Positions 2,841-62,239 of a DNA stretch of 64,000 nucleotides are shown here, one piece after another (the stretch's first letter is position 1; every line of letters begins with the position of its first letter). The stretch comes from Anolis carolinensis (Eukaryota): NCBI RefSeq assembly GCF_035594765.1, contig NC_085842.1, forward strand, positions 434,001 to 498,000, given 5' to 3'. Below the pieces are notes generated by a model. That model was not told the origin of the DNA, did no database searches, and saw only the letters and a program-made list of their open reading frames with translations. Both the position numbers and the translations under genes were made by a program.

Positions 2841-2891
<51 letters not shown>

Positions 2892-2924
2892 TAATAATAA
2901 TTAGTCTTTGAACATTTCACTGGT

Positions 2925-10227: not shown

Positions 10228-10963
10228 CTGGAGAGAGAGCAAGGGGTGGAAAGCTGGTCACAGAAACAGGCCTCAGAGGTGACCATTGCAGTCCTATAAA
10301 GAAACCGGTGAGGAAACGACCCTAAGAACACAGGCACATTCAACAGCCAATGAAGATGTACAATGTGAGGGTTTAGGACTTTATCTCGCAAGCAGGGCTG
10401 TGTTTGAGTGAAACTAGCACTGGGCTTTGTGTTTCAATTGACAAAAGTGATTCTTTGCTGTTTGTCTTCCAGCTCAGTTTCAGGGCTCAGCTCAGCTTAG
10501 GGTCCCACCTGGGAAGACACTGAAGGGCTGCATTGTCAGTCCTATTGCAAGAAAGAAAACTGCAAATCAAACTGAAATGACACCTCTAGCAACCCTATGC
10601 CTACATATAACAATTTATTTTATTTTTATTATTATTATTATTATTTTATTTTTTTACTCGCCTCTTCTTGCAGTTCCAGGCAGGTTACCACAAAATTTTA
10701 AAAACACAACCTTTGTCAAAATTCAACAAAGATACATATTTCTATAAAAGATCCACATTAAAACTGCCTTTCTATAAAATACATATTAAAGTACATAAAA
10801 CATCACAGAAAAGACATGAGTTTAAGATATATACCCATCTCAAGGCCAAATGATCCGGCATGTTCACCTTCTGAAGCTCCAACTGTGGGTGTGCACTCAT
10901 CCCCCCAAAGCGGGATTTCCACTGGCACAAAACCCCAAAACTCCCAGAAGAGTTCCTTCTCAC

Positions 10964-11081
10964 CCTGCAAGGCGGCAGCCCCGTCTCCTTCCCGCTTCAG
11001 CTCCTTCTGCCTGAGACTCTGGCTGGTGTCTGGTGGAGATTCCTCTGGTGCAGGGACTTCCATGGAGTTATTATTATGGGC
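10964..11081 (-). CDS. Gene A linker exon (AHNNNSMEVPAPEESPP..., phase 0 to 1)
   Basis: cttccag|GCC acceptor, G|GTGAG donor; frame joins the SCAN exon. Confidence 0.75.
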
Positions 11082-11417
11082 CTGGAAGAGCACAGAGCAT
11101 TCCAGAAGGAGTTTGGGAAATGTTCAGAAACATCACAGACCTATAGACCTTTTTTGGAAAGAATAACTCTGAGATGGCAACCTAGTTTGGAAGCAATGCC
11201 CCCCTCCCCCTCCCACCATTGTCTATGTTCTATCTTGAGCAGAGCATCAACCAAGCTGAGGGTAGAGATGGAGGGGCAGAGCAGGTGGGGAAAGAGGCCA
11301 AGGGAGCAGGGCCTTGCTTATCCACCACATCGGTCCCATCTTGGAAGAAAGGCAGGATGTACGTTCAACCTGTCCATCAGTCCCCAGGTTAGTGAAACCC
11401 AGAGGGAATGCTCTCAC

Positions 11418-11801
11418 CTGTCCTTCCTGCTCCTTGTCCTCGGCCCGACTCAGGAGGAAGCCTTCCGCCAGGGCCACCGCCTGGGAACAGGTCTCTGCCC
11501 CACACTCTCGGACCCAGCTCCCCATTTCTGGGGGCAGGATGCTCAGGAACTGCTCCAGGGTCACCAGGTCCAGCACCTCGGCCTTGGTGTGCTGCTCTGG
11601 CTTCAGCCACTGGCGGCACAGATCGTGGAGACGACTGCAAACCCCTCTGGGTCCTTCACCCTCTTGGTAGGAGGACTGCCTGAAGCGCTGGCGCTGTGTG
11701 TCCGAGCTGTCAAGGTCCACACTCAGGGACTCATGTCTTTTCCAGGATTCCCCACTGCCCCCAGGTCCTGCTTCAGGTCCATGTGAGTTGGGTCTCTCCA
11801 T
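11418..11801 (-). CDS. Gene A SCAN-domain exon (exon extends to acceptor at 11928)
   Basis: [63 protein letters not shown] is a SCAN signature; donor CAG|GTGAG. Confidence 0.92.
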
Positions 11802-12239
11802 GTTGGAACCACCCTGGTGAAGAACCCAACCGTATCCAAGATGCTTTTCCTCCTCTTCTTTCTTTCAAGGGAAAGAAATCCCTCCACAGGCTCTACTCCG
11901 AAATTCTCAGCCAAAAATCACATTTCCTCTGTGAAAGAAAGGCAGAAAGGTTGTGGGACCAGGCTTTTGAGCAATAGTAGCAGCAGAAATGGCAACTATA
12001 TGATCCAAGGTATAATGACAGACCCGGTTTGTACTTGAAATGCACCTTGAATTTTTATTTAAATGTACATTTATGAAGGTCTGAATGTAACTTAATTTAA
12101 ATGGAATTTTGAAATGTGACTGTAATTATTTGATATATGTTTTTTATGCTGTAAGCCACCCTGAGTCCCCTTGATGGGTGAGAAGGGCGGGGTAGAAATG
12201 TTGTAATATTGTAATTTTGTTCGTTTGTAATAAATAAAC

Positions 12240-13640
12240 ATAAAGAAGACTCAACAATGACATGGTTTCATTATATAACTGACTCCAACAGAGACTCCGT
12301 CTAGACAACAAAATGGGTAGACAAGAATCGGAGAATCATCGGAACCAACTGCTACAGACAAAAAAACAAGCCAACTGGGAAGCTGCATCAATTTCTTCTG
12401 AAAGATTTTACAATTGATGGAGAAATAAAAGAACCTATGAGTCAGTGGGTGAAAAGTCTAGGCTGGGCAATAAGTCCATGAGAATGGGAAGAACTCTGGT
12501 AAAAATGACTAAAATTTACAAGGAGTCACACAATTAAATAAAATTTCTACAAAATGATACATAGATGGTACATAACTCCAGAAAAACTCTCAAACACACA
12601 CACACGCACAGAGATATATGATATGTTGGGACTTGTCCAAAAGCTAACGAATTCTGAATAAAAATCCACAGAGACATGGAAACTATTCTAGAGTACAAAA
12701 TCCCATTAAGACCAGAACTTTTTCTACTGGGAAACATCAAGAAAGACTCTTTCTTTATATGACAACAGAAGCAAGAACTGAATACGCAAAACTATGGAAA
12801 CAACAAGACATGCCAACACCAGAAAACTGGACGACAAAAGGTTTCGAAATGGCCAAAAAGGACAAACTAACTTCAGCTGCACAACAAACAAATACACAGA
12901 AACTTCCAAGAAGAATGGAAGCCCTTCATTGAATTCACAAAGAAGCAAAGGGGCCGGGCTGTGGCGCAGCTGGGTAGTAACCAGCTGCTATAAATCACTA
13001 CTGACCGAGAGGCCATGAGTCCGAAGCCCGGGTCGGGTTAAGCCTCCGACCATAAAAAAAAAAAAATAGCCCCGGCTTGCTGTTGACCTAGCAGCCCCGA
13101 AAGACAGTTGCATCTGTCAAGTAGGGAAAATTTAGGGACGCTTTATGCGGGAGGCTAATTTAACTAATCTACAACACCATAAAACTGCTCACGAGGAAAA
13201 GAAGAGGAAGAACAGCCACCAATGGACGGTGAAGCAACAGCTCCCCCTGTGGCCGGAAATCGTGAAGCTGGAAAGATGTTAAAAAATGCCTCTGTGTCTG
13301 TCTAAAACTGAATGTTGTTTGTCTGTTGGCATTGAATGTTTGCCATATATGTGTTCATTGTAATCCGCCCTGAGTCCCCTTCGGGGTGAGAAAGAAGGGC
13401 GGAATATAAATACTGTAAATAAAGGAAGATGACCACGGCAGGATCAGTTGAGTAAAATATTATTAATAGTATACAGTTACATTTTGTACTATTTTTGAAC
13501 TCTTTATTCAAGAGACTTTGAATAACTGACCTATCAACACTCTTTGATTAGAATATAAAAGGTGGCAAGCCATGTTAGATATTTTAGAGTGAAACATTTA
13601 TATACAAATACATATTTGTGTAGTGTTTAAATAAAAGAAA
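12240..13640 (+). mobile_element. Degraded L1-clade 3' fragment interrupted by a SINE
   Basis: Relic W.CPK..FW..IH....IL...IPL.PELFLLG motif near 12625-12730; A-rich plus strand; paralogue at about 34740-35560. Confidence 0.5.
12951..13420 (+). mobile_element. Full-length tRNA-headed SINE with L2-like tail (Anolis SINE2-like)
   Basis: Head gggccgggctgtggcgcagctgg, B-box-like gtccgaagccc, tail taatccgccctgagtcccc; absent in paralogue near 35335. Confidence 0.85.
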
Positions 13641-14139
13641 AGATAACAAACATAGTGAATTCTCACGCCCACAATCCTAATTGACTAACCAATGGAGCTG
13701 CTATTTGGGATCCATCTGGCAGTCGTGATGATGAGATGAAATGCCTGCAAAGAACGGGAAGAGGAGGCGGGAAGGAGGCCGGATCTCCTGGGAAGGCCAG
13801 AAGGTCCTGAGGAGAAGAGGGCGTTCGCTTCTGTCTCCGAGGCCCTGTGGATCTCCCCAACCCCGAGGCCATGTCTCTCATCCCGGGGCCTGGGCTGAAG
13901 AGAGGGACGTGAAGGCAAAACCAAGGCCAGGCCTCTCTCCCGCCCTCCCTCCCTCTTTCTTGGGATCACAGAAGACACGGAGACACTTCTTTCCTATTCT
14001 CAAAGAGACCTCCTTCGTTCTACAGCAGACCCATCACATTCACTCTTCCAAACAATCCTACCTTTCCTTTTGGCATCCAATGTTCTTTCCACCCTTCAAG
14101 CTGAGGTCAAGATTGGCCCTCAGGTCCCGGGAATGGCCG

Positions 14140-14960
14140 TTCATGGCGGAACGGCGAAGGAAAGGGCCGGGGGAGATTCTGCCCGGAGACGGATGACGTC
14201 AGGGAGGGAGGCGGATGCCCATTGGCGGACCCTGGGCGTTGGGAAGAAAAGAAAGGAGGAGCGTCTCTCTCTGTCTAGAGCTCCGTTCGACGGCCGAGAA
14301 GCCCCGCCCCTCTCTGGGCATCGTGCCCGCGGCTGCCATGTTGAGCCCGGGCGGAAGTCCACCGAGGAGGGAGGCGTCTTCCTAGAGAGACTCAGGACGA
14401 GAGGCGCCTTTTCCTGTCAGAGCGAGCGCGGGAGGGAGAGGAAGGAGGAAGCGGAGGAGGAGGAGGAGGAGGAGGAGGAGGAGGAGGGGTGAGTGTGCGT
14501 GTGCGTGTTGGGGGGGGGGGCTGAGTGGGTCCCCGAGTCTCCCCCGCGCCCCCCTCCGGCCTTGGCCTGCCTGGCCCTTCGCCTCAAGGCCTCCCTTCCG
14601 GCCTCCCTTCCTGCCCCCCCCATCTCCACCTCCATCTCCACGCAGAGGCGCCTCCCGCTCCTTGGCCTGGCCCCCCCTTCTCCGCTTCACCCGGCGCTTC
14701 CTCGGGCAGCCTGCCTGCCATGAGGAGCGGGCCAGGAGAGTCCGGCCCAGGGCGAGTCTGCCCGGAGACGGGTGACGCGGAGAGACGAGGCCCATTCCCA
14801 TTGGCCGATTCCTGGAGTGACCGTTAACGGCAGAAGGGCGGAGCGGGGGGCGGGGCGGGGGCGTTCCTGCCCGGAGACCGATGACGCCAGAGAGGAAGGC
14901 GGATTCTCATTGGGCGTTGGGAGGAAAGGAAACAAGGGGCGTGTCTGCCCATTTTCCGCC
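14140..14960. promoter_or_regulatory. CpG-island (probably bidirectional) promoter between genes A and C; candidate non-coding exon 1 of C ends at 14488
   Basis: High CpG. Three X1-X2-Y modules, GC box gccccgccc, YY1-like gctgccatgtt, ETS gcggaagt, (GGA)n, donor G|GTGAGT at 14489. Confidence 0.75.
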
Positions 14961-15506
14961 GGGAATTAAAAACATGGATGTTCCAGAGCGCGTTTGAATG
15001 AACAGGCCCAATACAGCTGGCATTAAAATGCTTCTCTCTGTTTTAAGGGCATACGGCACTTTATCACTCATTTCCATGACACAGCACTTTATGAAACCTG
15101 TCCCCGCTGGTTGTTTTTAATTCTATGATTTTATTGCTTGGATTTTAATGTATTTATTATTTATTTTGTGAATCGTTGGAATGTTTTTGGTCAAATGTCT
15201 TGTGTTGTTGTTTTCGGGCTTGTCCCTGTTGTAAGCCACCCCGGGTCCCTTTGGGGAGATGGGGCGGGATATAAAAATAAAGTTTATTATTATTATTTAT
15301 ATTATAACAGATTTCATATGCAATAGGGTAACAGTGTAAATCAATGTTTCTCAACCAGGGGGTCGGGACCCCTGGGTAGGTCACGAAGGGGATGTCAGAG
15401 GTGTTGTCAAAGACCATCAGAAATACATATTTCTGATGGTCTTAGGAACCCCTTTGGCAGTCCTTGTGAATGTGATCAACAAATTCTCTGGTTAATTGGG
15501 GACCAT

Positions 15507-17175
15507 TTTATTTATTTATTTATTTATTTTATTAGACTTGTATACCGCTACTCCCAGTTTGGCTCGGAGCGGTTTACAGAAATAGATTAAAACAATACAC
15601 TTAGCTTTAAATAAACAATAACAACAATAAAAACAACAATAAAAACAGACATAGCCCCGAGTTTTTCACCCATCGAAAGCTTGTTGGAAGAGCAAGGTTT
15701 TGCAGGCTTTCCGAAAGGCAAGTAGGTCTCGGATAGTTCGAGTTTCAACTGGCAAGGCATTCCATAAATGAGGGGCTACAATCAAGAAGGCATTCTTCCT
15801 AGTAGAAGACAAATGATAAGTCCGTATGTTAGGGATTTCAAGCAAATTTTGGTCTTCGGACCGAAGTAATCTCTGGGGTTGGTAGGGGGATAAGCGGGCC
15901 CTCAGGTACGCCGGCCCTAAACCATGTAAGGCCTTAAAGGTTAGTACCAGTATCTTGAAAGTAATCCGGTACTCAATCGGTAGCCAGTGCAGCTGTTGTA
16001 GAATTGGGGTGATACGCCACCTCGCCGGCACCCCGACGAGAAGACGAGCTGCCGCATTTTGCACCAGCTTCAGTTTCCGGATCACTGACATAGGAAGGCC
16101 AATGTAGAGGGCGTTACAGTAGCCGAGCCTCAAGATGACCGTCGCCTGGATCACCGTAGCCAGGTCGTTCCTAGATAGGTAGGGAGCCAGTCGCCTAGCC
16201 TGACGTAGATGGAAAAACGCAGATCTGCTCACAGCAGAGACCTGGGCCTCCATCGTGAGCAGAGGGTCCAATAAGACACCAAGACTTTTTACAGAAGATG
16301 ACGGACGTAGTGTCTCGCCATCCAGGGTAGGCAGCTGCATCTCCCCCCCACCCGGACGGCCCAGCCAAAGGATCTCCGTCTTCGCTGGATTCACCCTCAA
16401 CCTGCTGGCACGCAACCATCCAGTAACGGCCTCAAGGCACTGATGGAAACTATTGGGTACGGAGTCCGACCGGCCCTCCATCCTCAGAATGAGCTGTGTG
16501 TCATCAGCGTACTGGTGGCACTCAAGCCCAAAGCTCCGCACCAGTCGGGCAAGCGGTCGCAAATAGATGTTAAATAATAGAGGAGAGAGAATAGCTCCCT
16601 GTGGGACCCCACAAGTTAGTGGAGACCTCTCGGAAACCATCCCTCCCCTCACCACCCGCTGTCCCTGATTCTGGAGGAAGGAGGACACCCATTTAAGGGG
16701 TATCTCCCTAACCCCCATCATGGCTAGGCGATGGGTCAATAGATTGTGATTGACCGTATCAAATGCTGCTGTGAGATCCAATAACACGAGCAGCGCTGAT
16801 CCGCCTTGATCCCTTTGGCAGCGAAGCTGATCTGTGATGGCAACTAGCACAGTCTCCGTCCCGTGCCCCCTACGGAAGCCGGACTGGAAGGGATCAAGTC
16901 CGGCTGTGCGATTGAGGAACTGCTGCAACTGTTCCGCTGCTGCCCTCTCAACCACCTTGCCCAGAAACGGAAGATTCGAGACTGGGCGGTAGCTAGAGGA
17001 AACCGAACGATCTAAGTCTGGTTTCTTCAGCAGCGGAGAGACCATCGCCTCTTTTAAACCCTCTGGAAAAACTCCTCAAGGGAGCTATTTATTATATTCA
17101 ACAGAGGTTCACGTAATCCCTCCAGGCAAGATTTTACTAGCCAGGAGGGACGCGGATCGAGGGAGCAGGTGGTCG
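15507..17175 (-). mobile_element. 5'-truncated L2-clade LINE with an open RT ORF (15666-17045)
   Basis: YRPVSNLPFLGKVVE, LDLTAAFDTV, GVPQGAILSP, YADD, KLVQNAAARL..LHWLP; 3' tail ending in (TAAA)n. Confidence 0.9.
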
Positions 17176-18440
17176 GCCTAGTTGCAGTCATCTGGTGGCA
17201 CAAGCTATACCTGGTACTACCCAGATGACAGTCAGAAGCATCATCTTTAGCACATAATTTTAGTTCGAGCCACAACATTGTCTCCTGTGCAAAAGCAAAC
17301 TTTTGCCTTTATTTTTCCTTCATTTACAATGTAATGTCTTCCTGTCCTTGTTGCCTTTCTATGAATCTGCTGCAGTTTGCCAATGTCCTTTCTAAAATGG
17401 ACTGAACTGAGCAGAACTGGGCAGGAATCATGTCTCCCACCCAAGGGTGCTGTTGGAGTGCAGAAGGATCTGGAGGGCAGCAGGATTCCCACTCACCCTG
17501 GGGGTCTATCCATCTGTCTCCTCTATACCGCCTTCTCTCATGTACTGCTGCTAGGCTGAGTGCCTTGGCTCTGGCTGAAGTTACATACCTTTGTGGTATA
17601 GGTTTTGTAAGAATGCAGTATGTCAAGGAACTTTGTGGCCTAATGTGCTCTCAGTGTCTCCAGGCGCCTTGCTTTAGAAACGTGGGGCAGGGATCACGCT
17701 GCAGGGAAAGAGAGGATCAGGAAAATATCTTTTTCCCGAGTTGGGAGAAATCTACACAAGAAAATGAAGTATTTTTCTCCCAAGACTGATCACTTGGGAT
17801 AGTCTGTCCATACAGATGGCCACTCAGGTTTTGAGTGGAGATGTGAAGAAGCGGGATCTAGGTAGGAAATGCTTTGCATCGTTAGCCCCTTTCCGTGTTG
17901 ACCATATTATTAGAGGCCTTCCTTTACCAAGGTTGGATTAGACACAGGATCTTAGGCCGCTATCCCCTTTGCAGGGATTGTTCTTTGTTGGGCAAGTGTT
18001 AAAGTGCTTCTCAGCAGGCAACGGGCTCTTACCAGTTGGGCCAGTCTTTCTCCCCTCTTCCCCTGTGATTGCTACAGCACTAGGCTATTGTTCTTCATGT
18101 TCAATGAGATCTTTCTGTACTCTGCTCCTGATAAGATTTTCCTCTTATTCATCTCGCAGGTAACCTCTAAACGAACCTTATGAAGAAAACATTGCCGTTT
18201 GCCTTACGTCTGAAAGGAAAGTACGCAGGATTAACAAGAACAAGAAATAAATTGGAGAAATTATATTTCAAGCTACATACCTTTGAATGTAAGGAAAGGA
18301 AGGATTGTGCTGTAAAAAGAGGGGTTGGTAAAGAGAAAATAAGGCTACAGCAATACAGAGACTGGGAAGAGGAAATGTCCTATTCAGGAGTCCATATCTG
18401 TGAACTTCAGGCATAATATTAGAATAATAAATGTTAAAAA

Positions 18441-20003
18441 ATGGAAACTTCATTGTCAAAATCACACACAGGGGAGAAGCGACATAATTGTAAGGACTGT
18501 GGGAAATGTTTCATTAGGAGAAGTTCTCTTGCTAAACATCAACTAACTCACACAGGAGAGAAGCCATATAAATGTGTGGAATGTGGAAAGAGCTTCAGTC
18601 AGAGTGGAAATCTACACACCCATCAAAGGACTCACACAGGGGAGAAGCCACATACATGCATGGAATGTGGAAAGAGCTTCAGTCAGAGTGGAGATCTACG
18701 CACCCATCAAAGGACTCACACAGGGGAGAAGCCACATACATGCATGGAATGTGGAAAGAGCTTCAGTCAGAGTGGACATCTGCGTATCCATCAAAGGATG
18801 CACACAGGAGAGAAGCCACATAAATGCATGGAATGTGGAAAGAGCTTCAGTGAGAGTGGAAATCTACGCAGCCATCAAAGGACTCACACAGGGGAGAAGC
18901 CACATACATGCATGGAATGTGGAAAGAGATTCAGTGAGAGTGGACATCTGTGTATCCATCAAAGGATGCACACAGGAGAGAGGCCACATACATGCATGGA
19001 ATGTGGAAAGAGCTTCAGTGAGAGTAGAAATCTACGCAGCCATCAAAGGACTCACACAGGGGAGAAGCCACATACATGCATGGAATGTGGAAAGAGCTTC
19101 AGTAAGAGTGGACATCTGCGTATCCATCAAAGGATACACACAGGAGAGAAGCCACATACATGCATGGAATGTGGAAAGAGCTTCAGTCAGAGTGGAGATC
19201 TACGCACCCATCAAAGGATCCACACAGGGGAGAAGCCACATACATGCATGGAATGTGGAAAGAGCTTCAGTAAGAGTGGACATCTGCGTATCCATCAAAG
19301 GATACACACAGGAGAGAAGCCACATACATGCATGGAATGTGGAAAGAGCTTCAGTCAGAGTGGAAATCTACGCACCCATCAAAGGACTCACACAGGGGAG
19401 AAGCCACATAAATGCATGGAATGTGGAAAGAGCTTCAGTCAGAGTGGAGATCTACGCACCCATCAAAGGATTCACACAGGGGAGAAGCCACATACATGCA
19501 TGGAATGTGGAAAGAGCTTCAGTCAGAGTGGAAATCTACACACCCATCAAAGGACTCACACAGGGGAGAAGCCACATAAATGCATGGAATGTGGAAACAG
19601 CTTCAGTGAGAGTGGACATCTGCGTATCCATCAAAGGACTCACACAGGGGAGAAGCCACATACATGCATGGAATGTGGAAAGAGCTTCAGTCAGAGTGGA
19701 AATCTACACACCCATCAAAGGACTCACACAGGGGAGAAGCCACATAAATGCATGGAATGTGGAAAGAGCTTCAGTCAGAGTGGAAGTCTACGCACCCATC
19801 AAAGGATGCACACAGGAGAGAGGCCACATACATGCATGGAATGTGGAAAGAGCTTCAGTCAGAGTGGAAGTCTACGCACCCATCAAAGGATGCACACAGG
19901 AGAGAAGCCACATACATGCATGGAATGTGGAAAGAACTTCAGTAACAGTTCGAATCTTCGTACCCATCAAAAGATTCACACAGGAGAGAAGCCACATAAA
20001 TAG
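18441..20003 (+). CDS. Gene C: effector-less C2H2 protein, 18 tandem fingers, 520 aa
   Basis: ORF = 9 aa + 18 x 28 aa + 7 aa. No KRAB/SCAN/SET exon seen upstream. Candidate 82-nt non-coding exon 18078-18159 is conserved with gene D. Confidence 0.88.
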
Positions 20004-20094
20004 GACAAGTGCAAAGAAGCAGAATGGTTGTCCAAAGAACTTCTAACGACTATGACTCAAAAGAGACATGAACAGGAAGTGGAAGGGGAAGAAA

Positions 20095-20630
20095 TCATAT
20101 AACCATAGAGTTGGAAGAGACCTCATGGGCCATCTAGTCCAACCCCCTGCCATGAAGCAGGAAATTGCATTCAAAGCACCCCGGACAGATGGCCATCCAG
20201 CCTCTGCTTAAAAGCCTCCACAGAAGGTTCCACAGCTGAACTGCTCTCACAGTGAGGAACTTCTTCCTTATGTTCAGGTGGAATCCCCTTTCCTGTAGTT
20301 TGAAGCCATTATTCTGCATCCTAGTTTGCAGAGCAGCAGACAACAAGTTTGCTCCCTCCTCCTTATGGGATTTTGGCCTGCATAAATAGGGGCAGAGTGT
20401 CTAGATCCAGGGAAGTCATGCTCCCCCTCTATTCTGCCTTGGTCAGACCACTTTACCTGGAATCACACTGTGTCTAATTCTGGGCACTGCAATTGAAAGG
20501 AGACGTTGAAAAGCTGGAAGGTGTCCAGAGGAGGGCGACTAAAATGATCAAGGGTCTGGAGAACAAGCCCCATGGGGAGCGGCTTAAAGACCTGGGCATC
20601 TTTAGCCTGCAGAAGAGTAGGCTGAGACAA
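20095..20630. mobile_element. CR1 3' fragment with internal inversion (20095-20367 minus, 20368-20630 plus)
   Basis: Both parts match the CR1 copy at 28541-29066. Confidence 0.75.
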
Positions 20631-20759
20631 GAATGAATAAATGCATGTACAAGTATATATGAAAATATCAATCTGGGTTTGTAAAAGGAAGGCAAATGTC
20701 ACGTTTGATAGGAAGAGTATTAAACAAAATATGTCTGTCTCAAGAGAGGAAGTTAAAAG

Positions 20760-22700
20760 TGGGGATACTAGCATTAGATATATTTAATGCTTTGATTGTG
20801 TAGCATGGCAGATAATAAGTGAGATTATGAATTAATTTGGAATGGGAAGTAGAATAAAAGGATGATTAGAACCATTTTATTTGCTATGGTGATAGAATTA
20901 TGTGCAAACGCCATCCAAAAAGGTAAGAATGTAGAAGGTGTAGGAATAAAGGAAAAGCAGAAGGTGAGCTTATTTGCTGATGACACATTGTTATTGATTA
21001 AATATCTGGGTAGGTCAAATGGATAGGAGAGAGGATCATTGAAAGATATTTGGGAAAACAGTGGGTTTATATTATACAAAGAAAGAAGAAAAAAACTTTA
21101 TAGAACAGAGCCATACGGGAATTAGAATCAAGAACAAATTAATATACCTGGGAGTAAGTATAACAAAGGACTTAAAAGAAATAGAAGAGGTAAATGTAGT
21201 AGCATTGAGGAAAATAGTTCAAAAAAATTAATACACATCTATCTTGTTTGGAAAGACAGCAATACTAAAAATGAAAATGCTTCTGAGGATAAACTTTATA
21301 CTTACATATACCTTATATTTATAATGCCATTTCAGATTACAGAAGAAGAGGTGAATACATTATTTCTTTGCAACATTTCTACCCCACCTTTCTCCACCCC
21401 AAAGGAGACTCATTTGGACAAATGATAAATACTGTAATGGCAGTCAAAGAAATTGCCGAAACAAGTTACAGAACAGATCTCAAAAAGAAGAAGGATTAGC
21501 GCTTCCTCATATGAAAAAATATTATAAAGCAAACAGACTGAGATTGGTTATACAAGGAATGATGAAAAGGAGGATGTAGAATAGTTAATAATGGATTCAG
21601 GAAAAGTGGAGGAAGAAATTCGTAATATGTTTTAAAATAGTTTATGAGAAAAAAAATAAGGTAAACTGGGAACCCAATGTTGAGTAATGCATTAGAAATA
21701 TGGAACAAATACAGGAGAAAGTTAATAACAGATGGCTCAATAATAACCCCAATTATAATGGAAAAGACATTTCCAAAAAATAAAAAATATATATGATGGA
21801 TAAAAAAATTAAGGGGAAAAACTTAGATAAAATAGGGGATTGACCAAAGGTTGGAATGAAGAAAGAAAAGATTAGGAACATAAAAATTTGAAAGGAATAT
21901 CCAGTAAAATTTCTAAAATATTAATTGAAAAAAACAAAGGAAAAGTAAAGAATAACACAGAGGGGTTATAATTATGGGCACAAAGACACTTGAAAAATAT
22001 ATCCATATGTGTTAAAGAAAATTATTATTTAGTTGATATGGAAATGGTACCTCACACCCATAAGAATAGGAAATATAAATAAAAACTACTCAAACAATTG
22101 CTGGAGAGGATGCCAAGAATCGGGAACATACATACATATGTGGTGGCAGTGTCAATATATAAATAATTTCTGGGGAAAAGTATTAAGAGAGATAGAAGAC
22201 ACAATGAACATTCAAATAGAAAGAAGTCTTAGCATGGCTTTATTCTCATTATATAATAATAAACAGTTGGAAAAAGAGGACAAAGATGCGATAACAAACG
22301 CATTAACAATTGCAAGACTGCTTATAGCAAGGAATTGGAAAAGGGAAATAAATATAGAGATAGAAGAATGGTATAAGGAAGTATGGAAACTGGGAAGAAA
22401 TGATAGGTTGACGTGGAGAGGGATTTAGAAACAAAGTGGTTGTGATGATGTCTGGAGAAAATGTATTGGAAGAGGATTCAAAAGAAAGACAGAATTACCT
22501 CCTCAAGAGAGAATGAAAAGGAATTTTGGACAGATGATAAATAAAAAAAGTGACTTGGGGGAGGGTAAGAAATCTGTATAAGCGTGACAATAACAGTAGA
22601 TGCCAAATGTTAATGTATTGTAGATTGTACTGAATATAATGTGGCTGCTGTAAAAGGATGTACGATTTTTTTTAAAAAAAATTAATAAATGTATTTGTAA
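20760..22700 (+). mobile_element. Degraded L1-clade ORF2 3' part
   Basis: LFADD near 20970; WKWYLTP..CWRGCQESGTYIHMWWQC (22033-22428); strong A bias. Confidence 0.75.
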
Positions 22701-24325
22701 TTTGTATAAATATGCATTTGTTTTTCTTTCATGTGTTTGAATATAAATTATTTTAAAAAACAGATTATGATGTAGCAGCTATAAAAGCCAATGTGATTCC
22801 AGGCTGTCCCGATAGGAGGATTCTGTCTATATCCAAGGAAGTCACGGCCTCCTTTCTTCTGCTTTGGTCAGACTCACCTGGAATGACCCTGTCTCCAGGT
22901 CTCGGTCCCACAATTCAAGACGGATATTGACAGGTCAGAATATCTCCAGAGACGGGATGTAGAGAAGGGCGGAGAGAGACAGCTGGGTATGTTTCACTTG
23001 GAGGAAAGAAGGAAGGGCTTCTCCCTCGGCAGGAAGGAAATGTTGGATCCCAAAAGGGTTGGCCGTGGTCAGGATGAGAGGTGGACGGAGAGGAAAGGCG
23101 TGTCCATGAGACCCCGTGTTGCCTCCTCCTGGAATGGACTCCTAGGACCCTAGAGCCGGAAGAGACCCCCAAGGGCCACCCCGTCCTGCCCCTGCCATGC
23201 AGGAAGGCACAATCAAAGCACTCCAGGTAGATAGCAACTGCAGAGAAGCCTCCAGAGAAGGAGACTCCACCACACTCTGAGGCAGCCTAGGCCACTCTCC
23301 AACAGCCCTTACTCGTTCTTATTGTGTATCTTTGTATATTAAGAGAAGACCTGTAAATAGTTATAAGTAGTGAATAAATCAAGAATAAAACCTCCAAGGA
23401 CTTTGGATGAAAGTCAGAACTCAAGAGTGTTTATTCAAAGAGACGAACTAGTTTACAAGGCCAGAGGCTGTGAAACTGTGACCAGGACTCTGCAGTGTTT
23501 TGGGGGTTGGAATCCACTCCTTGCCTATGAGACAGTCTGTCCCATTGTATAGCTGGAGGAGGCCGTGAGAGGACTGAATTCACCTGCCTGTCTAGCAGGG
23601 GTGTTGTGTGTGTTTTACTCTGCTTCTCCTTTCCTTCCATCACTCATTAACACTGACTAGTTGTGCAGGCCTCACCTACACAACAGAAAGCATTTCCTGA
23701 AGGTAAGAGCTGTTCAGTAGTGGAGTCTGCTCCTATCGGGAGGAAGAGGAGATGTGTGTTCTTTCGCCATGAAACCACTGATCCCGTGGGTCGTGGAGTC
23801 CAGCCCCATTCTCTCCAAGCAGCGTCACCATCCAGACCATCCTCCGCAGGTCGCTCTCCAGCCCCTTTTTGGGGTCATCCAGAGAGAGGAACCCGCACTT
23901 CTCTAGGCCCTTGCCTTCTTACCCAAATCAGAGATTCACAGAATAGTATATTTGGAAGAGACCACGAGGGCCATCTAGTCCAACCCCCTTCTGCCAGGCA
24001 GGAAAAGCAGAATCCCTTGCCAGAATCCCCGCAGGGTTCAATACTGTCTCCCACGCTGTGTAACATCTACATGAAGCCGTTGGGAGAGATCATCTGAAGT
24101 TTTGGAGTTCAATGTCATCTGTACGCAGAGGTCTTCCTTGTCAGTCGCAAGGCCAAACAGGGCACAGGGTCACAGCCTGTGTTGGATGGGTTACCTGTCC
24201 AAACGTCTCTCCCCTTATGAACCATCTCGGAGTCTAAGACCGTCTGGAGAGGCCCTGCTCTCAATCCCGCCCTCTTCGCTGGCATGATTGGCAGGGATGA
24301 GAGACAGGGCCTTCCTTCTCGGTAG

Positions 24326-24800
24326 TGGAAAGGATGGGAAGAGAAGAGAAAAAGGAAGGAAGGGCAAGAGAAAAGAAGACAAAGGAAGGGAAGGAAGGAA
24401 GGGGAAGAGAAAATAAGGCAAAGGAAAATATGGGAAGAGAAGAGAAAAAGGAAGGAAGGGCAAGAGAAAAGAAGACAAGGGAAGGGAAGGGAAGGAAGGA
24501 AGGGGAAGAGAAAATAAGGCAAAGGAAAATATGGGAAGAGAAGAGAAAAAGGAAGGAAGGACAAGAGAAAAGAAGACAAAGGAAGGGAAGGAAGGAAGGG
24601 GAAGAGAAAATAAGGCAAAGGAAAATATGGGAAGAGAAGAGAAAAAGGAAGGAAGGACAAGAGAAAAGAAGACAAAGGAAGAGAAGGGAAGGAAGGAAGG
24701 GGAAGAGAAAAAGGAAGGGCAAGGGAAAAGAGGGTAAAGGGAAGGAAGGGAAGAGAAAAAGGAAGGGCAAGAAAAAAGAAAGCAAAGGAAGGGAAGGTTA
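24326..24800 (+). repeat. Polypurine (G/A) minisatellite, period about 96-101 bp
   Basis: atgggaagagaagagaaaaagg recurs at 24334, 24430, 24531, 24627. Confidence 0.9.
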
Positions 24801-25119
24801 GAAGGCAGACCCTGTATTTTAGTTCTTGTGAACCACTGGTAGTTCGTGGACCACTGGTTGAGAGCCACTGTCTGAAAGGGAAGGGGCTAACTCTGGATCC
24901 CTCCCATAACGGCCATTTACAATATTCAAGCTGACCAGTCCTGACTAAAGAGGAAAACAGAGGATGTGTCTGTAGGGGCACAACGTTCACAAACTGGACA
25001 TTTAAACCAAGGTGGAAATGGAGCTGGAAACTAAGACCAGAAGAACAAGTGATGGAATCACATATGGTTTATTTCTTTTCAGATGAGGTGACATGACAAT
25101 CATATTTAACCCTCTGAAG

Positions 25120-25254
25120 CAGTGGTCCTCAAGCTGTGGGTCCCCGGATGTTTTGGCCTACAACTCCCAGAAATCCCAGCCAGTTTACCAGCTGTTAGGC
25201 TTTATGGAAGTTGAAGGCCAAAACATCTGGGGACCCACAGGTTGAGAACCACTG
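25120..25254. mobile_element. Short palindromic hAT-type MITE
   Basis: cagtggtcctcaagc..gttgagaaccactg termini, imperfect 8-bp TSD, internal ctacaactcccagaa. Confidence 0.75.
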
Positions 25255-25415
25255 TTCTGAGGGATTGTCAAACAGAGCTTGCTTTCTGCTATTCCAGAGA
25301 ACAGGACCTCCAACTTAGGGATTCAAATGACAAGAACGGGACTCCACCAAATCTGACGCAGAACTTCTCAAAGGGTCCTGTTTGAAATCAGACATTTTCC
25401 CACAATGGCTGTTTT

Positions 25416-26521
25416 TTAGCCTGTATGTGTTCTCTGGTGCTGGTTAAGGGCTGAACTCTGAGTAAAACATTTCCCACACTCCTGGCATTGGTATGGCTTC
25501 TCTCCTGTGTGGAGTCTTTTGTGGCTCACCAAGGCTGTACTGGTAGTAAAACATTTCCCACACTCCTGGCATTGGTATGGCTTCTCTCCTGTGTGGAGTC
25601 TTTTGTGTTTCACCAAGTTTGAACTGGAAGCAAAACATTTCCCACACTCCTGGCATTCGTATGGCTTCTCCCTCGTGTGGAGTCTTTTGTGTTTCACCAA
25701 GTTTGAACTGGAAGCAAAACATTTCCCACACTCCTGGCATTCGTATGGCTTCTCCCTCGTGTGGAGTCTTTTGTGTTTCACCAAGTTTGAACTGGAAGCA
25801 AAACATTTCCCACACTCCTGGCATTCGTATGGCTTCTCCCTCGTGTGGAGTCTTTTGTGGCTCACCAAGTCTGAACTGTAAGCAAAACATTTCCCACACT
25901 CCTGGCATTGGTATGGCTTCTCTCCTGTGTGGAGTCTTTTGTGCCTCACCAAGGCTGAACTGGTAGTAAAACATTTCCCACACTCCTGGCATTCGTATGG
26001 CTTCTCCCTCGTGTGGAGTCTTTTGTGTTTCACCAAGTTTGAACTGGAAGCAAAACATTTCCCACACTCCTGGCATTTGTATGGCTTCTCTCCTGTGTGG
26101 AGTCTTTTGTGGCTCACCAAGGCTGAACTGAAAGCAAAACATTTCCCACACTCCTGGCATTGGTGTGGCTTCTTTCCTGTGTGGAGTCTTTTGAGCCTCA
26201 CCAAGGCTGAACTGGAAGCAAAATACTTCCCACACTCTTGGCATCTGTATGGTTCCTGACCTGTGTGAAATTTCTTGTGTTTCACCACACATTTTGCAAA
26301 TACTTTCCCTTTAAGATGGCTTTTCCCAGCATCGGGTGTCTTGTGAAGCACAAGTGCCATATTTTGGGTAAAACACTGCCCACATACATTGCATTTGTCG
26401 GGCCTTTCTCTGGCAGAACCTCCATCTTCTCTGTGGGCTTGCTGGTCTCGACGAAAGGCCCAGTTGTGTCCCAAATGCTTCCTGTACTTGGTGCATACAT
26501 GGCTCTTCTCCCCATTATCTA
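25416..26521 (-). CDS. Gene B terminal exon: 9 canonical C2H2 fingers after degenerate ones. Gene B = SCAN-KRAB-C2H2 (ZKSCAN-type), 602 aa, join of 34407-34018, 33680-33566, 32658-32588, 31342-31216, 26521-25416
   Basis: All introns GT-AG with compatible phases; 390+115+71+127+1106 = 1809 nt = 603 codons including the stop. Confidence 0.9.
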
Positions 26522-26981
26522 CTGTGAAGAAGAACAGAAACAATCATTCCTCAGTGTGAGTGATAAGGAAGTGGGATAAGAAGTGGACTGAAAAGAGCCT
26601 CAAAACAACACAGACATGGAGGAAAAGAAGATATGCCTGTTGTCCTTTCCCCTCCCCTTGTTCAGTGAAGATGGACCCTGGTTGTCTGCCTGGAGCCTCT
26701 AAGAGAGAGATGAGTAACATACGCTCCAGAGGCTCCCTGTTGCTCAGCCCAGCCCGGTTTTTTATTCCGTCTCCTTCTCTCTGGGGAATGGATGCCTTTT
26801 CCCTTCACATCCAAATGCTTGCCTTTTTCTCTAGCTTTAGACTTTACCAACTACCACCCATTTCACCATCCTTCCCTCCCTTTTATTTCTCTCCCCCAAT
26901 CCCAGTTCTCTCTTCCCATGCTCCCTTAAGGTTGTATTTTTCCGCTCCAACGTAGAAGATCCCATACCTAATTTCAGAGAA

Positions 26982-40930: not shown

Positions 40931-41267
40931 TAATTGGCTTTCTCCCCCACCCATTACCGCCCTCCACCCTGCCGTCCCCACAACCCTCCAGCACCCTAAG
41001 GCACAAAATGCAAATGCAGTTGCCAAGTGCAAAGGGTGCAGGAGCAGCATGAGTATAGGGACTCGATTTAAAACTAAAGTGCAAAGCAGGCTATGAGGTA
41101 TTATAATTGATGGGCGAGTGCCTTCAGTGTAATTTCATAAAGTCCCAACACAGGACCAATTGAGGTAGAATTAAATTTAGCAGCAGAGAACATTCGTTAT
41201 GGCAGCAACATTCAATGTTGTTAGTCAGTGTTCACAGCAGGGCAGACTCACAGTTCCGATGGAACCT

Positions 41268-41733
41268 TATTTATTTATTTACAGTATTTATATTCCACCC
41301 TTCTTTCTCACCCCGAAGGGGACTCAGGGCGGATTACAATGAACACATAAATGGCAAACATTCAATGCCAACAGACAAACAACATACATTAGACAGACTC
41401 AGAGGCATTTTTAACATTTTTCCAGCTTCACGATTCCGGCCACAGGGGGAGCTGTTGCTTCACCGTCCAGTCGTGGCTGTACTTCCTCATTCCTTTCCTC
41501 GTGTTTTGCTGGCAGTATTTTATGGTGTTGTAAATTAGCCTCCCGCATAAAGCGTCCCTAAATTTCCCTAATTGACAGGTGCAACTGTCTTTCGGGGCTG
41601 CATAGGTCAACAGCAAGCCGGGGCTTTTAATGGTCGGAGGCTTAACCCGACCCGGGCTTCAAACTCATGACCTCTCGGTCAGTAGTGATTTATAGCAGCT
41701 GGTTACTAGCCAGCTGCGCCACAGCCCGGCCCC
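41268..41733 (-). mobile_element. Full-length tRNA-headed SINE (same family as 12951)
   Basis: Reverse complement of the 12951-13420 element. Confidence 0.85.
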
Positions 41734-42415
41734 TTAATAGTTAATATTATGATGTTAGATCATGCAGGGGGGGGGGGTCAAGAGGAATGGCCTTTCAGCA
41801 TGACTGCGGTTTGTTGGTGTTCCACAGTCATGGCTGTTTGGTCCGGATCCACCACTGACGGGGTCTCTGGATGTGGATGCTGCCCCTGCCATTCCTGCCC
41901 GCAGGCCCTGCTGATGGGAATAACAACCACAGTCCTAGCCCTAGAGACACGTGGGAAGGGTGCGAGGAGGTGGGATCCCGTGGAGGGGGGGGGGGGCGGC
42001 AGAGGGGCCTCGTCTGGCCCAAACTACTTGTCTGAACGTATCTCCTCTTATGAACGAACTAGGTTGTTGAGATCATCTGGGGAGGCCCTGCTCTCGATCC
42101 CACCTGCCTCACAGGCTCGTCTGGTGTGAACGAGGGACAGGGCCTTCTTGGTAGTGGCTCCCCGGCTGTGGAATGCTCTCCCCAGTACTATTCGACAAGC
42201 CCCAACACTCCTAAGTTTTAGGAAAGCAGTGAAGACATGGCTGTGTGCTCAAGCGTTTGAGGAATAAGTATCTGAGGTGATATGGCTTGAATCAAGGCGT
42301 CCGTGAAAGGCGTCAGTGGATGAATCTAATTACACATGCTTTTTAACACTTTATAATTCGTGTTTTAGTAGAGTTCATATAGTTTTTAATTGATTTTTGT
42401 ATTGTTTTATTGAAC

Positions 42416-42780
42416 TGGGCCGGGCTGTGGCGCAACTGGCTAGTAACCAGCTGCAATAAATCACTACTGACCGAGAGAGAGGTCATGAGTTCGAAGCCCG
42501 GGTTAAGCCCCCAACCATTAAATAGCATAGCTTGCTGTTTACTTATGCAGCCCGAAAGACAGTTGCATCTGTCAAATAGGAAATGTAGGTATGCTTTATG
42601 TGGGGAGGCTAATTTAACTAATTTACAACTGCCAGCAACATGCCGGAAGAGGAATGAGGAAGTACAGTCAGTAGTGGACGGTGAAGCAACAACTCCCCCT
42701 GTGGCCGTAATCGTGAAGCTGGAAATGTTAAAGGCCTCTGTGTGTGTCTATACTGTATGTTGTTTGTCTGATGGCATTCG
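42416..42780 (+). mobile_element. Same SINE family, 3'-truncated, abutting the promoter of gene D
   Basis: gggccgggctgtggcgcaactgg head; stops at gatggcatt. Confidence 0.8.
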
Positions 42781-43900
42781 CCGGCCAGGAACGGGCCGCA
42801 GCACCAGCCAGCGCCAGGATCAGCCCCAGGGGCAGGAGGGAGTCTGCCTGGAGACCGGTGACGCGGCGAGACGGGAGCAGGTTCCCATTGGCGGGTCCCT
42901 GGGAGTTCTCATCAGTGGAAAAGGGCCAGGGGAGATTCTGCCCGGAGACCGATGACGTCAGAGTGGAAGGCGAGTTCCCATTGGCTGGTTGGTCCCTGGG
43001 AGTTCTCATCAGTGGAAAAGGGCCAGGGGAGATTCTGCCCGGAGACCGATGACGTCAGAGTGGAAGGCGAGTTCCCATTGGCTGGTTGGTCCCTGGGAGT
43101 TCTCATCAGTGGAAAAGGGCCAGGGGAGATTCTGCCCGGAGACCGATGACGTCAGAGTGGAAGGCGAGTTCCCATTGGCTGGTTGGTCCCTGGGAGTTCT
43201 CATCAGTGGAAAAGGGCCAGGGGAGATTCTGCCCGGAGACCGATGACGTTAGAACTGAAGGCGAGTTCCCATTGGCAGGTCCCTGGGAGTTCTCATCAGT
43301 GGAAAAGGGCTGGGGGAGATTCTGCCCGGAGACCGATGGCGTCAGAGTGGAAGGCGAGTTCCCATTGGCGAGAATTTTGAAAAGCAAGGGAGAGATGGAA
43401 AGAAAGGGGGAGAGAGGGAGGGAAGGGCAGGACATACATACACCCCCCTCTCTCTCTATTTATCTCTCTCCCTCCCTCCCTCCCTCCCTCTCTCTGGGGC
43501 TCCACTGCCGTTGAACTCCCGAGAAGCCCCGCCTCTCTATGGGTCTCCTGCCCGCGGCCGCCATGTTTGCTCCGGGCGGAAGTCCAGCGAGAGGAGGCGG
43601 CCTCTGTTTCCTAGAGAGGCGGGCGGGCGGGCGACGCTTTCCCTGTGAGCTCACTTCCGGAGGAGGAAGGGGACGGTGAGGGAGCGAGCGAGCGAGCGAG
43701 CGCGGGAAGAAGCCTGAGGAAAAAGTCTGAGGCGGCGGTGAGTGTGTGCCCGGGCCCCTGCTTCCCCCTCTCCCTTCCCCGGGCTTTGGGGCGGAGGGAG
43801 GGGCTGCCTCGGGGGCTCTGCGGCCTGCGCTGCCCTCCGGGCCCATGGCGGCGCCTCTGCGCATGCGCCCTCCTCCTCCCTCCCCCCCTCCCTCCCCGCT
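42780..43900 (+). promoter_or_regulatory. CpG-island promoter and non-coding exon 1 (donor 43737|GTGAGT) of gene D
   Basis: Paralogous to 14150-14530: GC box, YY1 gccgccatgtt, ETS gcggaagt and cacttccgg, NRF1 tgcgcatgcgc. Confidence 0.72.
42895..43370 (+). repeat. 97-bp tandem repeat (5 units), each carrying X1-CRE-CCAAT
   Basis: Units start at 42895, 42992, 43089, 43186, 43279. Confidence 0.95.
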
Positions 43901-44026
43901 GTTATGGCCTTGGTGTCCTGTGCTTGATTTATCACTAGTATTTATTTATATTTATTTGCATCTTTTCTACCCGGCCTTTCTCACCCGGGGGGGGGGGGGG
44001 GGACTCAAGGCGGCTTACAAAATAGA

Positions 44027-45376
44027 GTAGAGTCTCACTTATCCAACGTTCTGGATTATCCAACCCATTTTTGTAGTCAGTGTTTTCAATACATCGTGAT
44101 ATTTTGGTGCTAAACTCGTGAATACAGTAGAGTCTCACTTATCCAACATAAACGGGCCGGGAGAATGTTGGATAAGCGAATATTTATTTATTTATTTACA
44201 GTACAGTAGAGCCTCACTTATCCAACGTTCTGGATTATCCAACGCATTTTTGTAGTCAATGTTTTCAATACATCGTGATATTTTGGTGCTAAACTCGTGA
44301 ATACAGTAGAGTCTCACTTATCCAACATAAACGGGCCGGGAGAATGTTGGATAAGCGAATATTTATTTATTTATTTACAGTACAGTAGAGTCTCACTTAT
44401 CCAACGTTCTGGATTATCCAACCCATTTTTGTAGTCAATGTTTTCAATACATCGTGATATTTTGGTGCTAAACTCGTGAATACAGTAGAGTCTCACTTAT
44501 CCAACATAAACGGGCCGGGAGAACGTTGGATAAGCGAATATTTATTTATTTATTTACAGTACAGTAGAGTCTCACTTATCCAACGTTCTGGATTATCCAA
44601 CCCATTTTTGTAGTCAATGTTTTCAATACATCGTGATATTTTGGTGCTAAACTCGTGAATACAGTAGAGTCTCACTTATCCAACATAAACGGGCCGGGAG
44701 AATGTTGGATAAGCGAATATTTATTTATTTATTTACAGTACAGTAGAGTCTCACTTATCCAACGTTCTGGATTATCCAACCCATTTTTGTAGTCAATGTT
44801 TTCAATACATCGTGATATTTTGGTGCTAAACTCGTGAATACAGTAGAGTCTCACTTATCCAACATAAACGGGCCGGGAGAACGTTGGATAAACGAATATT
44901 TATTTATTTATTTACAGTACAGTAGAGTCTCACTCATCCAACGTTCTGGATTATCCAACGCATTTTTGTAGTCAATGTTTTCAATACATCGTGATATTTT
45001 GGTGCTAAATTCGTGAATACAGTAGAGTCTCACTTATCCAACATAAACGGGCCGGGAGAACGTTGGATAAGCGAATATTTATTTATTTATTTACAGTACA
45101 GTAGAGTCTCACTCATCCAACGTTCTGGATTATCCAACGCATTTTTGTAGTCAATGTTTTCAATACATCATGATATTTTGGTGCTAAACTCGTGAATACA
45201 GTAGAGTCTCACTTATCCAACATAAACGGGCCGGGAGAACATTGGATAAGCGAATATTTATTTATTTATTTACAGTACAGTAGAGTCTCACTTATCCAAC
45301 GTTCTGGATTATCCAACGCATTTTTGTAGTCAATGTTTTCAATACATCGTGATATTTTGGTGCTAAATTCGTAAAT
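44027..45376 (+). repeat. 179-bp tandem array (7.5 units) of MITE termini plus a SINE tail stub
   Basis: Unit starts 44027, 44206, 44385, 44564, 44743, 44922, 45101, 45280. Confidence 0.95.
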
Positions 45377-46552
45377 AACAGTAGATTCTCGCCTATCCAA
45401 CGTAAACAGGCCGGCAGAACGTTGGATAAGCAAATATGTTGGATAATAAGGAGAGAGTAAGGAAAAGCCTATTAAACATCAAATTAATTATGATTTTACA
45501 AATTAAGCACCAAAACACCATGTTATACAATAGATTTTACAGAAAAAGTAGTTCAATATGCAGTCATGCTAAGTAGTAATTACTGTATTTACGAATTTAG
45601 CACCAAAATATCACGATATATTGAAAACAGACTACAAAAATGCATTGGATAATCCAGAACGTTGGATAAGCGAGTGTTGGATAAGTGAGACTCTACTGTA
45701 CAGTAATTACTACATAGCATTACTGTGTGTTGAACTACCTTTTCAGTCCAATTTGTTGTATAACATGATGTTTCGGTGCTTAATTTTAAAAATCATAACC
45801 TAATTTGATGTTTAATAGGCTTTTCCTTAACCCCTCCTTATTATCCAACATATTTGCTTATCCAACATTCCACCGGCCCGTTTATGTTGGATAAGTGAGA
45901 CTCTACTGTATTTATATTCCGCCCTTCTTTCTCACCCCGAAGGGGACTCAGGGCGGATCACATTACACATCTAGGCAAACATTCAATGCCTTTTAACATA
46001 GAACAAAGACAAGACAAACATAGGCTCCGAACAAAGACAGAGACAAACGCAGGCTCCGAGCTGGCCTCGAACTCATGACCTCTTGCTCAGAGTGATTTGT
46101 TGCAGCTAGATTAAGGAAAAGCCTATTAATCATCAAGTTAGGTTATGATTTTACAAATTAAGCACCAAAACACCATGTTATACAATAGATTTAACAGAAA
46201 AAGTAGTTCATTATGCAATAATGCTATGTAGTCATTACTGTATTTACAAATTTAGCACCAAAATATCATGATATATTGAAAACATGGACTACAAAAATGC
46301 GTTGGATAATCCAGAACATTGGATAAGTGAGTGTTGGATAAATGAGACTCTACTGTACAGTAATTGCCTGGATCTTTTGACCCAAATCGGGATTTTAATA
46401 TTATTGTGTATATTGACTTTTATGACTGTTTTTAATCATGTTGAAGTTTTACTGCTCGGTTTAATGTTTTATCTGATTTGTGCTGTCGTGTCTGGGCATG
46501 GCCCCATGTAAGCCGCCCCGAGTCCCTCCGGGGAGATGGGGCGGGATATAAG

Positions 46553-62235: not shown

Positions 62236-62239
62236 CTGA

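Follow-up and report, generated by a model that had tools for sequence, protein, structure and literature searches.

The SXY module of major histocompatibility complex (MHC) genes packs its S, X1, X2 and Y boxes into 59-68 bp at tight spacing, and typically lies <300 bp upstream of the transcription start site (TSS) (PMC4243378; PMC4374748). Its S box is essential for NLRC5 (PMC4374748) and important for CIITA (PMC4381081). The XY boxes of CIITA-regulated genes measure 46-50 bp, and the length of their spacer is conserved while its sequence is not (PMC4381081). RFX5, CREB and NF-Y are also found together on thousands of non-MHC human promoters without CIITA function (PMC4381081; PMC4889920); only a small fraction of these co-bound sites recruit CIITA or respond to it (PMC4381081), and a few non-MHC genes, ZNF672 among them, are bound by CIITA in human cells (PMC4243378). 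Bidirectional promoters, in turn, carry a motif set of NF-Y, YY1, GABPA, NRF1 and ZNF143 (PMC3082894); NF-Y pairs with bZIP factors at defined distances, and zinc-finger (ZNF) genes are one of the classes that respond to NF-Y in human cells (PMC7793273; PMC4889920). Here we describe a cassette of 45 bases that occurs 11 times in a 64-kb stretch of the Anolis carolinensis genome (contig NC_085842.1, positions 434,001 to 498,000; hereafter the window, in which all coordinates are given). The cassette combines, in a fixed spacing, an invariant 12-mer, a cAMP-response element (CRE) type site and an inverted CCAAT box, and had originally been predicted, from the sequence alone, to be an MHC-like X1-X2-Y module of ZNF gene promoters. 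We interpret the 11 copies as one lineage-specific cis-regulatory cassette of a young SCAN-ZNF/poly-ZNF subfamily, and we lean towards reading it as a constitutive NF-Y/CREB-type module of a bidirectional promoter.

Eleven copies of one cassette

Both strands of the window were scanned for the pattern GCCCGGAGACNGRTG, allowing up to two mismatches, with dinucleotide shuffles providing the chance level. The scan returned 11 matches, all on the plus strand, where 0.39 were expected; none of 100 shuffles reached this number. Only the copy at 42846 departs from the pattern, by one mismatch (C>T). All copies (Table 1) are built from the 12-mer CTGCCCGGAGAC, a CRE-type bZIP site (G-r-TGACG-y) 3 bases beyond it, and the inverted CCAAT box yCCCATTGGc 20 nt past TGACGYN. 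A script placed the ATTGG boxes at 14221, 14800, 14909, 37548, 37652, 42887, 42980, 43077, 43174, 43271 and 43364. Measured from the end of GRTG, ATTGG follows after 25 nt in 10 of the 11 copies and after 26 nt in the copy at 42846. This spacing is not absolute: a paralogous copy outside the window (L006, see below) has 29 nt, through an insertion of 4 nt. In two copies of a tandem array the CRE core is damaged (TGACGTTA at 43231, TGGCGTCA at 43324), and a decayed twelfth Y box, ATTGG at 14113, lies to the left of the copy at 14181.

Relationships among the copies

The 11 copies are not independent. Tandem Repeats Finder reported a 97-bp unit repeated 4.9 times with 95% identity at 42894-43369; this stretch holds 5 of the 11 copies, which are one recent array, and CTGGGAGTT is present too in each of its units. 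Sequence reading and self-BLAST separated the copies into two subtypes: subtype A is marked by GGTGACGCGG and ATTGGCC, and subtype B by CGATGACG(T/C) and by GAAGGCG ahead of the Y box. An A-B pair recurs at three loci of the window (14760/14869 in locus 1, 37508/37612 in locus 2 and 42846/42940 in locus 3), with a pairwise homology of 72-85% that is essentially limited to the pair. The remaining copy, at 14181, is a B unit; on its right side, the flank is homologous to that of the B units in loci 2 and 3. The 11 copies thus reduce to ~7 informative ones, which descend from one old A/B duplication. In the history that we propose, an ancestral unit duplicated into subtypes A and B, segmental duplications of the gene pair then carried the A-B pair to further loci, and at one of them subtype B was amplified into the 97-bp tandem array. 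A transposon origin of the cassette was rejected, as the homology between loci sits in longer paralogous segments with no sharp element ends.

Further loci were retrieved via SCAN proteins. The same A-B pair was found in close paralogs on the same chromosome: L004 (9.22 Mb), the near-identical scaffold L005, and L006 (9.93 Mb). In all three, the pair lies ~3.1 kb upstream of the SCAN exon and antisense to it; in L004 it is in sense to a 19-finger array, with the SCAN gene and the finger array head to head as in the window. A 4-kb segment of the window that includes locus 2 (35300-39324) is 97.6% identical to positions 5051-9107 of L004, and locus 1 together with its right flank (14945-17516), which is rich in long interspersed nuclear elements (LINEs), is 97-99% identical to L006. 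We take these matches to be very recent segmental duplications of the gene-pair unit. As far as sampled, the cassette is specific to the young subfamily. A search for homologs with the 18-finger exon returned generic ZNF matches only and was of no use for finding orthologs.

Constraint on the boxes and their spacing

When seven copies were compared, CT-GCCCGGAGAC, G-n-TGACG and yCyC-ATTGG-C were invariant or nearly so, and the bases between them varied. When A copies are compared with B copies, identity amounts to 97% in the 12-mer and to 100% in TGACG and ATTGG, versus 50% for the spacer and 33-45% for the 30-nt flanks. A MAFFT alignment of the syntenic A-B pairs from the three loci of the window had one variable column among the 44 of the boxes, versus 55 among the 117 other columns (Fisher p=4.5e-9); the columns of TGACG and ATTGG, chosen a priori, were variable in 0/20 cases across the three loci. 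The longest invariant run of the cassette is the 12-mer. The spacer between modules is 48, 59 or 64 nt long, while the spacing inside them stays at 25-26 nt in the window. Indels are thus common between modules and rare within them, where we observed one insertion of 1 nt in the window and one of 4 nt in the paralog L006. Since box columns scarcely vary while spacers and flanks diverge, and since indels are rare inside modules, the boxes and, largely, their spacing are under purifying selection, as judged from these alignments.

At the level of description, the original prediction was accurate. It had listed 11 plus-strand modules, with the same 11 ATTGG coordinates and with a spacing of 25 nt in ten copies and 26 nt in one, all of which we reproduced, and the differences in spacer sequence that it had pointed out are evident between the subtypes. 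Its caveat that shared ancestry explains part of the similarity proved justified, given the tandem array and the two subtypes of one ancestral pair in three paralogous loci. It had also staked its case on boxes being better conserved than spacers across orthologous promoters, and this holds across the paralogs compared here.

Promoter context and transcription

The three loci lie in CpG islands (Table 1), with a GC content of 0.62-0.69 and a CpG observed/expected ratio of 0.60-0.70, against 0.45 and 0.42 for the whole window. The islands are placed between minus-strand SCAN-ZNF genes and plus-strand poly-finger arrays. SCAN domains (Pfam) were found only in two minus-strand exons, at 11247-11801 and 33847-34407, and the open reading frame (ORF) at 11247-11801 shares 99% identity with an anole protein from NCBI. 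The finger arrays of these SCAN genes lie on the minus strand, at or below 883 and at 25416-26543. No KRAB or SCAN exons were found in the window for the plus-strand finger genes. The motifs that accompany the cassettes are YY1-like GCCGCCATGTT, CGGAAGT, Sp1-type GC boxes and one NRF1 site.

Contigs from four public runs of the same organism, which we only guess to be RNA, were placed on positions 10900-15400. Contigs of two runs contain the joints 11080|11417 and 11928|14062, and the skipped stretches end in CT..AC, that is, they are GT..AG introns of the minus strand; the joint 11928|14062 was found in runs X1 and X11. A contig of 465 nt leads from the SCAN exon side across this joint into 14062-14418 and continues for 51 nt into a GAG repeat. 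The first exon of SCAN gene A therefore covers at least positions 14062-14469. Module B1 (14181-14225) lies antisense within this exon, so that this copy is transcribed on the minus strand as part of SCAN gene A; the A-B pair at 14760-14913 is located just upstream of the known extent of the exon, also antisense. In run X6, the bins holding modules were ~30 times deeper than their unique neighbours, and eight contigs had a T at position 14217, which points to further, expressed paralogous copies.

Comparison with the MHC SXY module

Published HLA promoter primers served as comparators. According to these primers, the X1-X2 segment of HLA class I reads GGATACTCA(C/T)GACGC(G/A)GA; in the same register, the sequence of the anole A copies is GGAGAC-nGG-TGACGCGGA. 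Among ~128,000 positions of the window, A copies are the two best matches to the HLA-A primer (14/18 and 13/18). With the 25-mer HLA-E primer the modules reach an unexceptional 13-16/25, as tens of unrelated positions reach 14-16/25. The resemblance to class I X1-X2 is, at the level of sequence, real and specific, though much of it is CRE. GGAGAC does not fit the RFX half-site consensus RGYAAC, and no RGYAAC occurs in any module; it is one base away from GGATAC of HLA class I, which departs from RGYAAC at the same two positions. TGACG, the core of an X2-type CRE, is invariant in 7/7 independent copies: it is extended to TGACGCG in four of them (the three A copies and the B copy at 37612), to TGACGCC in the B copy at 14869 and to the full TGACGTCA in the other two B copies. 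The ATTGG of the Y box has NF-Y-type flanks. The distance between X2 and Y is ~2 nt longer here than in HLA, where we take it to be 18 nt; if HLA-DRA measures 48 bp, which we likewise assume, this offset of +2, itself based on a presumed HLA sequence, would leave the total XY length within 46-50 bp.

In SXY modules the S (W) box sits at a fixed distance of ~16 bp upstream of X. No S (W) box was recognised here: the corresponding region matches the HLA-B S-region primer at 8-10/19, a level reached by 1,275 to 3,988 of 127,964 window positions (1-3%), and only a G-rich block is conserved where the S box would fall. Likewise, we found no interferon-stimulated response element (ISRE), kappaB or gamma-activated site (GAS) motif in the 1.0-1.4 kb scanned per locus, with no match to GAAANNGAAA or GGGRNWYYCC; the same scan gave one palindromic TTCGAGGAA in locus 2.

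The cassette is thus like the MHC SXY module in the order of an X1-like, a CRE-like and an inverted CCAAT element, in the hexamer located 3 nt ahead of the CRE as in HLA class I, and in a spacer that keeps its length while its sequence drifts. It is unlike it in having an X1 that fails RGYAAC and no S/W box, ISRE or enhancer A, in its 2-6 tandem copies per locus where MHC promoters have one, and in its zinc-finger host genes. With respect to the SCAN gene, the two also differ in position: SXY is located upstream of the TSS, whereas the anole modules are antisense to, and partly inside, the SCAN transcript. Their orientation fits the S-X-Y direction for a plus-strand finger gene. The cassette falls outside the SXY family in its defined form, since it has no S box and is not where such a module should be with respect to the mapped transcript. 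Human non-MHC XY sites (RAB4B, RFX5, ZNF672 and others) are also promoter-proximal XY-like composites; most of them have no S box that can be recognised, and most do not respond to CIITA (PMC4381081; PMC4243378). Those sites, however, are bound by RFX5, CREB and NF-Y, whereas the anole cassette is known from its sequence, is multimerised and is specific to one family.

The interpretive part of the original prediction therefore stands only in part. The ordered, spaced X1-X2-Y composite is real and keeps the class I X1-X2 register, and the absence of a clear S/W box had been correctly noted, the match being of an ordinary level; the X1 element, however, does not fit the RFX consensus. The placement in ZNF gene promoters agrees with the CpG-island 5' regions, but the RNA-supported SCAN transcript reads the modules antisense, one of them in its exon 1. 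The proposed wiring into a CIITA/NLRC5-dependent, interferon-inducible regulon found no support. Since RFX5, CREB and NF-Y share thousands of non-MHC promoters without CIITA function, an XY-like cassette alone does not imply such a regulon.

A putative bidirectional promoter module and its alternatives

The cassette is most probably functional, selectively maintained and promoter-proximal, and its motifs suggest that it is read by NF-Y, a CREB/ATF-type factor and a third protein on the 12-mer, in which case it would operate in the manner of the X-Y part of the MHC enhanceosome. We infer the identity of these proteins, and the direction and magnitude of their effect, as follows. NF-Y at the CCAAT box and a dimer of the CREB/ATF family at the CRE, kept on a fixed face of the helix, would hold the island open; the bound cassette would drive constitutive, probably bidirectional, transcription of the ZNF gene pair; and the 12-mer would bind a third factor, for which RFX is one candidate. 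As in described bidirectional CpG-island promoters (PMC3082894), we found head-to-head genes (in the window and in L004), a CpG island, and CCAAT, YY1-like, CGGAAGT, NRF1 and GC-box motifs, with transcription seen on one strand only. Unlike those promoters, the anole cassette adds a CRE and the 12-mer at rigid spacing, and is tandemly amplified. A plus-strand TSS is suggested by conserved GGTGAG donor-like sites to the right of the GAG repeats. If the cassette works in this way, a zinc-finger subfamily that duplicates rapidly has a compact promoter module of its own, one that is maintained by selection and can be amplified in tandem, and the copies are a natural experiment on the spacing constraint between a bZIP site and NF-Y. 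At present, this is a motif-level finding in one species.

Several observations weigh against the bidirectional promoter. Exon 1 of the SCAN gene contains copy B1 and, judging from homology, probably further copies, which puts the cassette downstream of the TSS of that gene. The contigs on 10900-15400 contain no plus-strand splices; being assembled, they cannot show starts, and their strand is given by splice dinucleotides alone. None of the motifs and consensus patterns that were checked corresponds to the 12-mer, which is the most conserved element, and the limits of this X1 box were set after its conservation had been seen, which makes that part of the conservation test partly circular. Finally, the cassette is absent from the distant anole SCAN loci L003, L009 and L010, and from the surroundings of the SCAN exons in A. 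sagrei (L001, L007 and L008) and Sceloporus (L002), loci for which promoter orthology is not established. The result in A. sagrei and Sceloporus is not evidence of absence in those species, and the A. sagrei genes at the sampled loci are arranged in tandem, not head to head.

The strongest competing explanation is that the cassette is a true MHC-type X1-X2-Y platform, on which the RFX complex, CREB/ATF and NF-Y would bind cooperatively and which would serve as an open-promoter module without CIITA or NLRC5, either descended from class I or convergent with it. We regard this as possible, if rather doubtful. The shared order of boxes, the GGAGAC hexamer exactly 3 nt before TGACGC as GGATAC is in HLA class I, the top-ranking HLA-A primer matches and the XY length, which on the assumed offset would fall in the range of CIITA-regulated genes (PMC4381081), all speak for it. 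In addition, X1 of HLA class I shares both departures from RGYAAC, and RFX5 and RFX7 need a single half-site (PMC8287911). Nevertheless, GGAGAC fails that consensus, the primer match is largely CRE, the HLA-E score is commonplace in the window, and the modules run antisense to, and partly within, an RNA-supported SCAN transcript. If RFX does bind the 12-mer, the cassette would show the MHC XY architecture in several copies, in a non-mammal and away from antigen-presentation genes, with a bearing on the age and generality of the enhanceosome platform. The anole MHC is located at one end of chromosome 2 (PMC9679377), and a more specific proposal is that a genuine, class I-related RFX-CREB-NF-Y platform was co-opted and multimerised by a young SCAN-ZNF cluster perhaps physically linked to it; this seems to us quite unlikely, and would mean, if true, that newborn zinc-finger genes are coupled to the transcription machinery of antigen presentation. 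The full original prediction, in which the cassettes recruit CIITA or NLRC5 and place the ZNF genes in an interferon-inducible antigen-presentation regulon, is highly improbable. It can draw on the XY-like architecture and on the few non-MHC genes, ZNF672 included, that CIITA binds in human cells (PMC4243378); yet the S box on which NLRC5 depends and which matters for CIITA (PMC4374748; PMC4381081) is missing, as are ISRE, kappaB and GAS motifs, and few sites co-bound by RFX5, CREB and NF-Y recruit or respond to CIITA (PMC4381081).

At the other extreme, the copies could be inert repeated DNA, a minisatellite or duplicated segment kept uniform by recent copying or gene conversion, with incidental CRE and CCAAT sequences. 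The array of five 95%-identical units, the 97.6% identity of L004 to locus 2, the restriction of the cassette to a young subfamily and the spacer indels of 1 and 4 nt all count in favour of this explanation. We nonetheless consider it very unlikely: subtypes A and B are old, with spacers only half identical, and their boxes are still 97-100% identical; across loci, one of 44 box columns varies, versus 55 of 117 others; conversion tracts confined to three short boxes are implausible; and the cassettes coincide with CpG islands and with a mapped first exon. A last explanation, to which we assign little probability, is that one of the zinc-finger proteins of the cluster itself targets the 12-mer together with the CRE next to it, which would amount to family-specific auto- or cross-regulation. 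This proposal is pure inference; it would account for a 12-mer that is the longest invariant run, resembles none of the motifs and patterns checked, and occurs only in promoters of a single young ZNF subfamily.

Table 1. Coordinates of the cassettes and of associated features in the window.
Feature	Position	Strand	Evidence and remarks
Module B1, CT-GCCCGGAGAC / GATGACGTCA / 25 nt / ATTGG	14181-14225	+	Pattern match; within exon 1 of the minus-strand SCAN gene (spliced contig over 14062-14418)
Module, subtype A (GGTGACGCGG), locus 1	14760-14804	+	Pattern match, alignment
Module, subtype B, locus 1	14869-14913	+	Pattern match, alignment
Module, subtype A, locus 2	37508-37552	+	Pattern match, primer comparison; best match of the window to the HLA-A X1-X2 primer (14/18)
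Module, subtype B, locus 2	37612-37656	+	Pattern match, alignment
Module, subtype A, locus 3	42846-42891	+	Pattern match, alignment; 26-nt spacer, GCCTGG replacing GCCCGG
97-bp tandem array, five subtype-B modules (X1 at 42940, 43037, 43134, 43231, 43324)	42894-43369	+	Tandem Repeats Finder, script; last two modules with mutated CRE cores
CpG island, locus 1	14100-14950		GC 0.68, CpG observed/expected 0.70
CpG islands, loci 2 and 3	37250-37990; 42780-43760		Composition
GCCGCCATGTT (YY1-type, minus strand AAnATGGCGGC) and CGGAAGT (ETS/GABP-type)	43557-43583		To the right of the array; locus 1 has a homologous block at ~14325-14358
Exon 1 (5' untranslated region) of SCAN-ZNF gene A, minimum extent	14062-14469	-	Donor 14062 splices to 11928; TSS right of 14469
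SCAN-domain exon, gene A	11247-11928	-	ORF 11247-11801, Pfam SCAN E=1.6e-35; splice joint
SCAN-domain exon, paralogous gene B	33847-34407	-	Pfam; 94% amino acid identity to gene A
18-finger C2H2 array ORF, candidate divergent partner gene	18441-20003	+	Module strand, 3.5 kb downstream of locus 1
C2H2 finger array, downstream of locus 3	61420-62356	+	Module strand; ORF 61420-62235, 10 finger matches to 62356

Neighbouring genes and repeats

Of the two SCAN genes, only gene B has a perfect KRAB-A box motif, at 31283-31336 (minus strand); the same pattern gives no match in gene A. Within intron 1 of SCAN gene A, positions 12942 and 13421 are directly joined in contigs of three runs, where the intervening 478 nt are missing and one C is added. 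The missing sequence is a repeat of very high depth that matches 57349-56877 at 97%, and looks like an insertion of the short interspersed nuclear element type that is absent in other individuals or copies.

Two LINE fragments with endonuclease and reverse-transcriptase ORFs were identified at 3116-5693 (plus strand) and 15666-17045 (minus strand) (Pfam RVT_1 E=2.5e-33 and 3.5e-39, respectively); the latter sits between locus 1 and the plus-strand finger array. In locus 3, the 97-bp units (42899-43291) each carry CCCTGGGAGTTCTCAT, which in reverse complement is similar to the core, TCCCAG, of the ZNF143/ACTACA motif enriched in bidirectional promoters. Directly to the right of this locus, at 44026-45437, a 179-bp unit is repeated 7.9 times with 97% identity.

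A different promoter-like cassette is found at 50840-50950. It contains CTCAGCCAATGGGAGG twice in tandem, with two CCAAT boxes 16 nt apart, together with a GC box, a GAG repeat and GAAATGGCCGCCGCC, in AT-rich surroundings with flanks rich in cgaa/ttcg. A palindromic CCAAT-bearing repeat similar to this cassette fills the sole CpG island of the A. sagrei locus L007 (3400-3900).

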